Assembly: GCA_964270895.1 (NCBI GenBank) | Contig: OZ185444.1 | DNA: 64,000 bases | DNA from: Podarcis filfolensis | Taxonomy: Eukaryota | Reading direction: 5' to 3' (one strand) | The notes under the pieces: model-generated | Seen by the model: the letters and a program-made list of their open reading frames with translations, nothing else | The model's database searches: none | What the model was told of the DNA's origin: nothing | Position numbers and translations under genes: made by a program | Shown: piece after piece, positions 28,574 to 61,739 of the stretch | Position numbering within the stretch: position 1 is the stretch's first letter | Layout of the letters: the number at the start of each line of letters is the position of its first letter

Positions 28574-28633
28574 ATTCTCTTTTATTTTGATATATTTTTT
28601 ACTGTCATTTTCACCATTGAAATTGCTCTGAAG
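28574..28633 (+). CDS. CACNA1C: Exon 21 (60 nt; IIIS2, mutually exclusive with exon 22)
   Basis: ttacag|ILFYFDIFFTVIFTIEIALK|gtaaag. Confidence 0.96.
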
Positions 28634-28774: not shown

Positions 28775-28834
28775 ATCCTAGGCAATGCAGATTATGTCTT
28801 CACTAGTATCTTTACATTAGAAATTATTCTTAAG
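28775..28834 (+). CDS. CACNA1C: Exon 22 (60 nt; IIIS2 alternative)
   Basis: tttcag|ILGNADYVFTSIFTLEIILK|gtaacc; branch-like CACTAAC at 28747-28753. Not in the ORF track. Confidence 0.96.
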
Positions 28835-31800
28835 GTAACCAATCTGAGCAATACACTTCTCTCTCTTGCTTTTGCTTTGTCTTTTGTACCGCTTTAAATC
28901 CCTAGTGTGATCTCCACAGACAGGTCATATTTCCTAGCTCAGCAGTAACTGTATGTGCTTTCAAAAATGGTTCCATTTTAATATTAAAGTCCCATTGGTT
29001 CATATAATTGTTTAGTCCCTTGCCATGTATAATTAACCCCAAAAAGGTCTTATGGCATGGAACACAATATGTATTCACCACTCTTGGCAGTAATACCTGC
29101 TTATCCCAGTGGAAAAAGATGAATTTTTCTGGTGAGTCTTCCTTGTGCAGAACTTACACAAAACAATATGTCTTACAAGAAACATACTGTATAGGCCATA
29201 AATAGTCCCTTCTCTCACTGCAGACTATTTGGCATCCGTACTATTTTGTGCTCTTCTGTTTTAAGTGGGAATAGGTAGCAGAATATCTACACAACACTAT
29301 AGGCCTACCAACGTATCGCATTCCTAGCCAAAATTTATGCACCTCAAATGAATGGTGATCCACTAATGTTTGCCTGGAACTGCAAAAATGGGAGGGAGGA
29401 ATTACCAAGTTCCTGGCAAGCCAGTTAATGGCTAGTGAGCTGCATTCAGTTCTAGATTGGTCAGGCCCTTAATGGAGGAACAGAGGAAAGCTGGTCACTA
29501 GAAAGCTGGTCACTAATAGTCAAATTACACATTACATCCCCAATTGCTTTTCCTAGGGAAAACACCTTCAGGAATGGGGAATTTTCCACAGAAAAGCAGG
29601 AAGGGGACATTTAATCCTTACCCTGCCTGCTACTTTTCTACTGCAATGTACGATATATATATCCTTGCAAAAACTCATTTGGGTCCTTGCATGAGGGTGA
29701 AGTGGTTTGGAGTGTTGCACTGGTTAACTACTCCTTCCCCACCCACCACCACAGTTTCTCTGCAGTAATTCACCTAAGACTCCTCTATGATGTTAGATGT
29801 GCTCCTGTCCTATGTATGGAACCTTTAAACTTAGAGAAAATAGCATTGAATTGCTTCTGTTGCCACTCACGGTATGTGACAATTCCCTAATCCACTCAGA
29901 CATTTTAGTACCTACTGGTTAAATTGTGAAGTTGGAACTTAACTTTAGAGTCTGCTTCTCAAAAAAGACCTGTTCCTTAAATGCATAATTTACTTTTCAA
30001 GTCTATTCTGCCTCATTTCAGTTAATAATTGCACCTGTGTGATTTCCCGCAGGGTGACACCTAACCCAAGAGGCTACTTGACAATACACCAAAACATTCA
30101 GATACAAAGTAGACTGCAGAGAAAATAAATATAAGCTCTCTTACACTTTGCATTCATTTAATATTTTAAAGAATAACTAAGGGACACTTTGTCTTTCTTA
30201 ATGTATAGGTGTACCCATTAAATTTGGACATAGATCTACAAACAGCAAAGAAGAATATCATACTCCTCATTCCTTCCACTAATTTACATAGGCACTGTTC
30301 AAACACTTACTAGTCTGGGCATAACTACACATTAATTGTTAATATTAAATGCAAATCATGACTGGGAAGGAAAAGGTTAAACCTTCCCACCCCATGTGCT
30401 GAAAATCCCCTTGCCACTTTGTATTGATTAAAAAACTTGAGATGACACAGTACCCGATATAATTAACGAATTGAATTGTGTCGTTAGGCCTTCTCCTATC
30501 ACATATGTACATTCACTGTGTCAGTACTGACTATACAAACACAATTAACTATGGAAAGGTCATAAGTGTACAAAACACATTCCCCAGTTGCAAGTTGCCT
30601 ATTTATCCCACAGGGATTAGATTATCAACTTCCATGCTTTACTCTAAAGATACCCGTTAATTGTAAAGAAAAATTCCAATGGCAATACTGCCTTAAACAA
30701 AAGCTGCAACCAAGTTATGCAGCAATTTGCTATGCCAATGAATTTCTTGGCAGGGATAGATAAACACACCTTGTATGGTACTGAAACTCAGCAGAGCTTC
30801 CCATTCTGATTTCAATGGTGTCTCCTCCTTTCCTTTAAGATTGCCATGCAAAACCAAGCCCTAAAAAGCATCTTTACTACCTTTGTTATGGCAAGAACCC
30901 CCCTTCCCCCAACCAACTATATATTTTTGTATAAATTCTACTCAAAGAGCAGATTTTATACTTCCTTTCTAATTTCTGTCTGATAGATCAGTAGTCAGTT
31001 CTTCCTGATGTAATTTGGTTTTTGATGACTTTATATTTAATTTATTTCCTACCCCATCAGCACAACTTTGATAAGAACTGGCTGGAAATTGCTAGGCTTT
31101 CTGGCCTGAAAATACCCTGGGTTTGTTGCAGGAATTCAGGAATGCAGCAAAAGTGGTTGGTTCTTCACATTCCAATGAGTGTTCTTGTATGACCATTCTT
31201 ATTTCTGATGTGTATATTCAAACATAAGGGGGTCACACTGAAGTCTGTTTTGCAGGTAATGTTTTCCTTATTGCAATCAGTCATGGCTTTCTATATATTT
31301 CTAGCTATATCTTTATATATGAACAATAAACATTCCCAACAAATTAACTGTTGGGTCTTTTGGGTTTGCCATGGTCCAATAGATAAATGCAAAATAATCA
31401 GACAAAAAAGCCAGGGATACAGCTACTTCCAATTACCAAATGGATGATCTAAAAATGAAGAGGGGACTCAGTGAATATAATTGCTACAGTTATAGATTAT
31501 GTGCATGTCTTTACCTGCTGAAGCATACATAAGGAAGAGTATGTATTGGCATTTGACTTTTTGCTCTCTAGAGGAAAATGTTACTTGAAAAAGCTATCAT
31601 TGGAGAGCTCAGTTCTAATATGATCTAGATAACACTTCTCAACCACTATTATAAGTGTTTCAAAACTGGGACAGGTTGCAAATTTTGCTTCAGACCCACC
31701 TCAGTTATCACTGTTTGTAAATTCCAGTGTGGAGATCCTTTTTTTTTTTGCAGGCAGGTGGTAGCCTTTGTGATACTAGTATTAAGAGAAGTAATCTAAT

Positions 31801-46576: not shown

Positions 46577-46687
46577 CACTATGGTCAGAGTTGCATCTTC
46601 AAGGAAGCAATGAACATCCTCAACATGCTCTTCACTGGTCTCTTCACCGTCGAGATGGTTCTGAAATTAATTGCCTTCAAACCCAAG
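46577..46687 (+). CDS. CACNA1C: Exon 30 (111 nt; IVS2)
   Basis: tttcag|[37 protein letters not shown]|gtagct. Confidence 0.97.
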
Positions 46688-60200: not shown

Positions 60201-60478
60201 CTTCATGCAATTCAGAACCCAATAACTATTCATCCTACAACAAACACACATGCAGGTAGTCCTTACATAAACACTCAATACCTTTGATTTCAATGGGATT
60301 GCTTATTTGAGTAATGCCAACATGTGTGGTTGTGTAAGAAAACTTATTCTCTAGCTACTCTTCTATAACCACTTGAGGACACCAGGGCAGTAATTCTAAT
60401 GCCGATTTTTGAACTGTTTTTTTTGTCTGTCTAACATTCCTTTTTAATCCCCATCCTGCCTGCCCCTTCCTTATGTAG

Positions 60479-60562
60479 GGTTACTTTAGTGATCCTTGGA
60501 ATGTTTTTGACTTCCTCATCGTAATTGGCAGCATAATAGACGTCATTCTCAGTGAAACTAAT
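60479..60562 (+). CDS. CACNA1C: Exon 31 (84 nt; IVS3, mutually exclusive with exon 32)
   Basis: atgtag|[28 protein letters not shown]|gtgagt. Confidence 0.97.
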
Positions 60563-60842
60563 GTGAGTATTACTCTACCCTCCCTAGGATGCCACCAAAT
60601 CCTCCTCTACTTCCTCCTCCTGTTTCCTTCTTTTTTATTATTTCTGGTTTATGTTTTCTTCCCTCTAGTCATGCTTTTATTGAACTTGCCGTCGTCCTTC
60701 TCCCAGGGGGAAAAAAAGGAGGGGGGTTGCATACCTCCTTCTTTTTCACTTGTCACAGCTGTGACCGGTGAAAGCACACAAAGCTTGGGGTACGTGTGCT
60801 TTTTTTCCCTCCAAAAAAATTCAGACATGTTTGAGTGAAACG

Positions 60843-60921
60843 TTCTAACTAACCAGGCTTTTGTTGATACCCTCCATCATGTTACAGAGGTATGAGCAGC
60901 CAATACTGTAGAGTGGTAAGA
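60843..60921 (+). promoter_or_regulatory. Complete set of splice signals around a candidate 28-nt microexon (60888-60915)
   Basis: Branch-like CTAACTAAC (60845-60853), pyrimidine-biased tract, TTACAG acceptor (AG at 60886-60887), donor GTG|GTAAGA at 60916. Confidence 0.5.
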
Positions 60922-60931
60922 GACTCTTTAA

Positions 60932-61291
<360 letters not shown>

Positions 61292-61739
61292 TGAAGTTTT
61301 TTTTTTTAAGGATTGCTTTTGTTCTGTTGTTCTGGATATTTTGTTTTTGCTTGTTTCTTTAAATTTGGAACAACTTTGAGGACTTTCTGACTGTTGCATC
61401 ATTTTCTTTCCCCCATAACCAGCCTGGCATGAATAAAAACTGTATAGTAGGAAAACCGATGAGAACTATGTGAAGTAAATGCACAAAGAGCAGGTTTGTG
61501 TCCTAGGAAGTTGGAGAAGTAGTCCAAGTTTAGGACTCCTGATTTGTCAAAGTTGAGTTAAACTTTCCATGGCACTGGGATACTTGCCACTTCACAGAGA
61601 TCTACAGGGCAACTCTTTCGAGGTGGAATAATGGGAGCCAAATGTCATCTGTTTTCTGCTAGGCCTTTATATTCCCAACTTTTTATTCAAAAACCACAAA
61701 TTCTTACAAGTCTGCTCACATTCTATGATATATTTGGTG

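Follow-up and report, generated by a model that had tools for sequence, protein, structure and literature searches.

Judged by its conservation, the site flagged between mutually exclusive exons 31 and 32 of CACNA1C marks a real conserved element. In the spacer between the two exons there appears to be a conserved pseudo-exon module, seemingly unannotated, and the flagged 79 nt (60843-60921) would form its 3' end. The fixed element of this module is a strong donor, GTG/GTAAGAG, at 60916 (a slash within a motif marks the splice junction). An invariant ACTAAC motif of optimal branch-site form (A at 60852) and an invariant AG/GT would give a micro form of 26-28 nt, and a conserved and much stronger acceptor about 220 nt further up would give a 247-nt form. 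A TAAC 26-28 nt past the donor, followed by an AG-free, UCUU-rich tract, is arranged as predicted for a distant branch point and a PTB-type regulatory tract. Recognition of the pseudo-exon, or U1 binding to its donor, may compete with the distant branch point of exon 32. If the exon were spliced in, a frameshift or stop would follow and the transcript would be degraded by nonsense-mediated decay (NMD). As a decoy, the module would help to set the choice between exons 31 and 32, or would remove transcripts in which both exons are recognized. That the conserved module serves as a non-productive or decoy exon, with a coupling to the distant branch point and selection of exon 32, is a reading to which we give a probability of about one half. 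More generally, the exon-like signals in the spacer probably control splicing, as their conservation suggests.

The exon 31-exon 32 spacer and its orthologues

CACNA1C encodes Cav1.2, the chief L-type calcium channel of heart and smooth muscle, and is a psychiatric risk gene. The exon-sized open frames of the window, by which we mean the whole 64-kb stretch of DNA analysed, translate to Cav1.2 segments IIIS1 to IVS3. Exons 31 and 32, at 84 nt each, are both frame-neutral. The spacer between them is 528 nt long, and 14.4 kb separate exon 30 from exon 32 (Table 1). Published exon 31/32 coordinates for human and rat give spacers of 584 and 602 nt, respectively (PMC5748662). The 31/32 switch shifts in heart development and heart failure, and its regulation has been described as unknown (PMC5748662). 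No tRNA-like SINEs were found. The original prediction had called the spacer free of repeats, which is left unconfirmed; Tandem Repeats Finder reports one small repeat (13 nt x 2.2) at 60990-61018. A second mutually exclusive pair is present in the window, exons 21/22 of IIIS2 (28574-28633 and 28776-28835, 60 nt each). The spacer of that pair is only 142 nt and holds the branch-like motifs CGCTAAC and CACTAAC.

Table 1. Features of the CACNA1C exon 30-32 region in the window, with the share of alignment columns that are invariant
Feature	Coordinates	Strand	Description	Invariant columns
CACNA1C exon 30	46577-46687	+	matches Cav1.2 structures, residues 1240-1276, E 7e-23	
CACNA1C exon 31 (IVS3, first of mutually exclusive pair)	60479-60562	+	from translation; donor GTGAGT at 60563	
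Exon 31 donor	60563-60574			10/12
Pyrimidine tract and YAG/TCATGC acceptor-like site	60648-60702	+	AG at 60667-60668, possible exon start at 60669; conserved 34-nt block follows	
Upstream acceptor-like block	60659-60694			7-9/12 per bin
Branch-site motif ACTAACC, branch A 60852	60847-60853	+	invariant in 8/8; 37-48 nt 5' of conserved AG/GT	
Branch-motif block	60851-60862			9/12
Tandem AGs	60886-60889	+	first AG in lizards only; second (60888-60889) within invariant AGGT	
AG/GT region	60887-60898			7/12
Micro-form body	60890-60915	+	26 nt from conserved AG, 28 nt from 60888; also 3' end of 247-nt form	
5' splice site GAGTG/GTAAGAG, G at 60916	60911-60922	+	most conserved signal of the module	11/12
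AG-free zone up to exon 32 acceptor	60923-61088	+	166 nt; preceding AG at 60921-60922	
Pyrimidine block	60935-60994			47/60
TAAC (branch-like A 60944) and UCUU-rich pyrimidine block to TTCATGC	60942-60994	+		47/60
Exon 32 acceptor	61079-61090			8/12
CACNA1C exon 32 (second of pair)	61091-61174	+	from translation	
Background, unconserved stretches between blocks				0-2/12

Orthologous contigs were collected by a word search with the open frame spanning exon 32, and many of the matches were frames on vertebrate genomic contigs. The protein queries covered 60986-61291 and 61085-61204, and a DNA pattern was taken from 60913-60958. Eight sequences were aligned with MAFFT: the window, L001, L003, L012, L002, L005, L007 and L008. 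L001, L003 and L012 are three other lizards near the window. Their exons are 99-100% identical to it and the spacer is 83% identical (computed for L001 and L003); the L012 spacer is, by eye, nearly the same as that of L003. L002 is a reptile-type sequence with exons 98-99% and a spacer 68% identical to the window, and the spacer of L005, also reptile-type, is close to that of L002. L007 and L008 come from a GC-rich lineage (L006-L010, GC 59%), whose exons, measured on these two, are 89-95% identical. The spacers of this lineage are 453 and 468 nt long and its exon-31 peptide differs; it is therefore neither human nor rat. Going by GC content, exon identity and intron length only, it probably represents birds. 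Pfam returned no match for the flanking frames of the GC-rich contigs.

Exon 31 was found at every orthologous locus. A frog (Staurois parvus, L004) and two teleost-type contigs (L011 and L015) served as outgroups. In L014 (ENA ERZ27256901, protein P0012), no exon-31 donor lies within 484 nt upstream of exon 32. This fits the 584-nt human intron, so L014 is possibly human and was left out of the DNA comparison. Going upstream from exon 32, its frame stays rich in pyrimidines over no more than some 90 nt, so this lineage may lack the distal conserved block or have it at another position. A 40-aa exon-32 protein query gave seven matches, none of them from a mammal. When metagenomes were scanned with the donor-plus-TAAC pattern, the sole match was a contig already in the set.

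Across the eight aligned sequences, ACTAACC, AGGT.TG, GAGTGGTAAGA and TAACCTCTTTCTTTTCT...CATGC are invariant. All eight also keep about 55 nt after GAGTGGTAAGA, a pyrimidine block headed by TAAC, where neighbouring intron is 25-50% identical. Invariant columns were counted in seven representative sequences in 12-column bins (Table 1). The GC-rich lineage is 77% identical to the window over 60887-60994 versus 25-27% over 60703-60844. An alignment-free comparison of the same two found the exact words GAGTGGTAAGA(G), TAACCTCTTTCTTTTCT, TTTTTTTCTCTTCTCTCC, TCTTTCATGCTTT and AGTCATGCTT in common, the last of them in the upstream acceptor block. The shared words reach 11-12 nt at the donor and 17, 18 and 13 nt in the pyrimidine block. 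Over the eight sequences, which represent three or more amniote lineages of deep separation, the branch motif, the AG/GT and the donor are thus strongly constrained.

Frog and fish have only low-complexity words in common with the window in the alignment-free comparison, and the block is absent from them. The bodies of the frog and teleost spacers contain no donor scoring above 6, the frog's only one lying 19 nt after exon 31. A 10-nt fish match was considered as a microexon remnant and dropped; it is not conserved between the two fish. L011 (at about 535-552 of its spacer) and, likewise, L015 share TTTTGTTGAT with window positions 60859-60868, just past ACTAAC, and one of the two shares TCTAACTAAC. 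These words could be remnants of an older branch-site element, or chance.

On the other side of exon 32, the first 40 nt or so of the following intron (window 61175-61215) look conserved between lizards and the GC-rich lineage. Read-through gives VSSW.LSM.VPAL in lizards versus VSTGVPP.DA.PA in the GC-rich lineage. This likeness suggests a further regulatory element 3' of exon 32.

Splice signals and possible exon forms

The signals named in the original prediction can be read directly in the window. The branch-like motif is CTAACTAAC at 60845-60853, with the branch A of its second CTAAC at 60852. The first AG follows 35 nt past this A, at 60886-60887, a second AG lies at 60888-60889, and the donor GTAAGA occupies 60916-60921. 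Translated in phase 0, the 28 nt from 60888 to 60915 give the expected RYEQPIL-stop. We scored splice sites with a crude, approximate matrix. On this matrix the micro form has an acceptor of 7.7 and a donor of 8.2 in the window, within the range of exons 30-32. In the 64-kb window, the + strand has five pairs of sites 15-60 nt apart that score at least as well, and the - strand has one. By sequence alone the candidate is an ordinary pseudo-exon, not beyond chance in 64 kb; what raises it above chance is its conservation.

Conservation treats the two ends of the exon differently. The donor and the AGGT are invariant in all eight sequences, and the donor scores 8.2 in every one of them on the approximate matrix. 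The first AG, proposed as the acceptor, is found only in the window, L001, L003 and L012, and it reaches 7.7 only in the window. The universal AG scores between -4.2 and 3.2, and in L002, L005 and the GC-rich lineage it reads GCCCAG/GT or GCCAG/GT. The donor is thus the constant element of the module. Measured from the conserved AG, the micro form would be 26 nt long in six of the eight sequences, 31 nt in L001 and 25 nt in L008, never a multiple of three. The predicted V-stop reading holds as V-TGA in the reptile-type sequences, but the GC-rich lineage has a frameshift with no immediate stop. The phase-0 TAG does not extend beyond the reptile-type sequences either, being lost in the GC-rich lineage. 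One exception is L001, where the 33 nt from the first AG are in frame and carry no stop. All other exon forms that can be drawn break the frame or carry a stop.

Two further acceptors can be paired with the same donor. In L002, L005, L007 and L008, ACTAAC is followed after 15 nt by TTTTGTCAG/G, an acceptor that scores 4.1-6.0 and would give exons of 49-59 nt. The upstream acceptor, at 60668/60669, scores 9.4-11.2 in all eight sequences; the acceptor of exon 32 itself scores 6.2-8.2. Together with the conserved donor it would bound exons that measure 199-273 nt (in the window 247 nt, 60669-60915) and contain phase-0 stops. Depending on the 5' end, possible exon lengths are thus 25-33, 49-59 or 199-273 nt, and the 28 nt of the original prediction may be simply the 3' end of a 247-nt exon. 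The upstream block (60659-60702) lies some 100 nt past exon 31; its word TCATGCTTT recurs at 60983-60991 in the downstream block, and CATGCAG forms the exon 32 acceptor.

At the level of sequence, the features expected of a poison exon are found here: flanking splice sites, a frameshift or stop (with the 33-nt exception in L001) and conservation. The idea of a poison exon therefore stands insofar as its signals are constrained and nearly all forms are non-productive, while the particular acceptor and stop first chosen are lineage-specific. Counting against an exon, the micro acceptor is weak except in the window, the 247-nt form shows no constraint in its middle part, and frog and teleost lack the block. 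A 26-nt exon is also hard to define, which counts against the micro form.

The donor, the downstream block and competing readings

The strongest constraint falls on the donor and about 75 nt downstream of it, a stretch that looks like a distant branch point and pyrimidine tract for exon 32. From the donor G to the branch A of TAAC the distance is 28 nt in seven of the eight sequences and 26 nt in the other. The AG-free zone spans 145-253 nt in seven orthologues and always begins 4-15 nt past the conserved donor; it spans 91 nt in the frog and 120 nt in one teleost. Long AG exclusion zones with a branch point at the upstream end mark distant-branch-point exons, which are often alternative (Gooding 2006, PMC1431707). 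The spacer has both: its zone of 166 nt compares with the 100-150 nt or more expected, and the TAAC, whose A at 60944 falls some 21 nt inside the zone, provides a consensus at the upstream end. On these grounds, 60942-60994 is probably the distant branch point of exon 32 together with a regulatory tract. In alpha-tropomyosin, the branch point sits so near the upstream donor that the two exons cannot be joined (PMC1431707). Steric exclusion of this type would call for a 5' splice site within about 50 nt of the branch point that serves the following exon. Here two other branch-like motifs are also conserved, CTTAT (A 60960) and TTCAT (A 60986), 44 and 70 nt past the donor. These lie further from the donor, so a steric coupling between donor and branch point is something that we only infer.

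The main alternative, a tentative one which we think may well be wrong, is that the block is a control region for exon 32 and nothing more. It would comprise a distant branch point, a pyrimidine tract and a PTB-type silencer, and no exon would be included. The donor-like GGTAAGAG and ACTAAC would then be, for example, a non-splicing U1 site or the arm of a hairpin. Conservation does peak from the donor into the pyrimidine block, the AG-free zone of 145-253 nt starts at the block, and the micro acceptor is weak in most species. RNAalifold predicts a hairpin in which the donor pairs with the start of the tract and TAAC is held in the loop. This hairpin counts for a control region by its layout and against it by its z of -1.1 versus column shuffles and its absence of covariation, which is expected because both arms are invariant. 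The alternative also leaves unexplained the invariant ACTAACC and AGGT 40-70 nt upstream, and the conserved acceptor at 60668.

Other pairings were considered and set aside. A duplex of the microexon donor with spacer positions +7 to +17 past exon 31 did no better than shuffles in seven of eight species. The purine run GGGGGAAAAAAAGGAGGGGGG (60705-60727), of which every lineage keeps some variant, might pair with the conserved pyrimidine block at 60946-60980 and loop out the whole region of the pseudo-exon. RNAalifold gives this purine/pyrimidine stem a z of -4.9, but both runs are of low complexity and the value was not trusted. No Rfam family matched the window spacer or five loci.

A control region would also agree with the human brain, where no exon has been reported at this place, which in turn counts against the preferred reading. 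A long-read study of human brain describes 39 novel exons, none between exons 31 and 32. Its transcript files contain no block start from exon 31 to about 35 nt before exon 32. Counted from the transcript start, these two exons lie at 580066 and 580734, respectively, and starts of the form 5801xx-5806xx were searched. This negative is weak, because NMD substrates are rare and isoform lists are filtered. The literature on poison or cryptic exons in CACNA1C yielded none between exons 31 and 32, and none of the 84 matches of the exon-32 frame query was a spliced protein fragment matching an exon form. One of the proteins, P0054, is a spliced fragment in which a lizard-like exon 30 runs straight into exon 32; the 75 residues that follow belong neither to exon 33/34 nor to anything that the window encodes. 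A search of sequencing runs returned six of RNA (X15-X20), with 17-20% of the 31-mers of 60400-61300, besides runs of DNA from three organisms. The RNA runs are labelled nervous system, reproductive system or chicken gut 'metagenome'. Their 17-20% exceeds the 12% possible from the two exons alone and comes close to the 24-25% given by genomic DNA of related lizards. Unspliced RNA, or else DNA, from a related lizard may be present in the six runs.

The original prediction also raised recursive splicing, in which an upstream exon would be joined to the AG/GT at 60889/60890 and the regenerated donor used next, so that the 26 nt are normally removed. We consider this very improbable. The AGGT is invariant in all eight sequences, a strong donor follows 25-31 nt further on, as in vertebrate recursive-splicing exons, and in the window the junction with the end of exon 30 reads AAG/GTATGA, where GTATGA scores 7.1. 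That GTATGA is unique to the window, however. Elsewhere the regenerated donor is GTTTGA, GTGTGC or GTCTGT, at most 6.0 in most sequences, and the downstream donor is stronger in every one. The acceptor at the site is weak, the upstream intron is only about 14 kb long, and exon 32 lies a mere 200 nt away, so the proposed layout is poorly supported.

It is also improbable that the block is a conserved element at the DNA level, such as an intronic enhancer, or a chance pseudo-exon inside a block conserved for other reasons. Equally good micro pseudo-exons do occur 1-5 times per 64-kb strand by sequence. Against this, the invariant positions coincide with sense-strand signals for splicing (a branch site, an AG, a donor and an AG-free pyrimidine tract), the spacing from donor to TAAC is fixed, and Rfam gave no match.

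A related role for the exon itself seems rather unlikely to us, namely that of a fail-safe. Double inclusion of exons 31 and 32 would stay in frame and escape NMD, so a frame-breaking exon between them would act as a safeguard. It would turn transcripts that recognize both exons, or that pair the wrong sites, into NMD substrates. With its donor 28 nt from the putative distant branch point of exon 32, the pseudo-exon would itself be mutually exclusive with exon 32.

Relation to known systems and meaning for Cav1.2

The preferred reading, a non-productive or decoy exon tied to exon 32 selection, resembles several known systems in part. SCN1A exon 20N is a conserved poison cassette exon in a voltage-gated channel gene (Carvill 2018 as cited in PMC12455821). 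Like poison exons of this type, the candidate is intronic, conserved and frame-disrupting, has good splice signals and lies in a channel gene. By analogy with poison cassettes, its inclusion would make an NMD substrate and lower channel output. Unlike them, its body is far less conserved than its donor and the downstream intron, and its 5' end is ambiguous. It also sits between mutually exclusive exons and is unrecognisable in frog and fish.

The distant branch point of alpha-tropomyosin exons 2/3 was reportedly described by Smith and Nadal-Ginard in 1989. As in that gene, a mutually exclusive exon here follows a long AG-free pyrimidine tract (PMC1431707), and the candidate TAAC is 26-28 nt from an upstream 5' splice site, too close for joint use. 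The difference is that the near donor belongs to the pseudo-exon, while the donor of the partner, exon 31, is 380 nt away. In addition, the exon 32 branch point is predicted, with two more conserved candidates at a greater distance from the donor.

Vertebrate recursive-splicing exons, said to have been described by Sibley in 2015, share with the candidate the AG/GT, the short exon and the strong downstream donor, and here too inclusion would lead to a premature stop. Unlike theirs, the regenerated donor here is not conserved at good strength, the surrounding intron is not long, and the next exon is 200 nt away. Decoy elements provide another parallel. Caspase-2 has the In100 decoy acceptor with an adjacent PTB site, and decoy exons are known that drive intron retention. 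The CACNA1C module similarly combines conserved intronic splice signals with a pyrimidine-rich tract, and purely by analogy it could engage nearby sites unproductively and in this way steer exon choice.

Whichever way it acts, the module offers defined, mutable sites for study of the 31/32 switch: the donor at 60916, ACTAAC at 60852, the two acceptors, and TAAC at 60944 with its tract. If the fail-safe role were true, it would be a new way to enforce mutually exclusive splicing in a major disease gene. Should mammals share the block, it would be a candidate target of splice-switching oligonucleotides and could help to interpret deep-intronic variants. If it is limited to reptiles and birds, it would add lineage-specific control to an exon pair that is otherwise very conserved.
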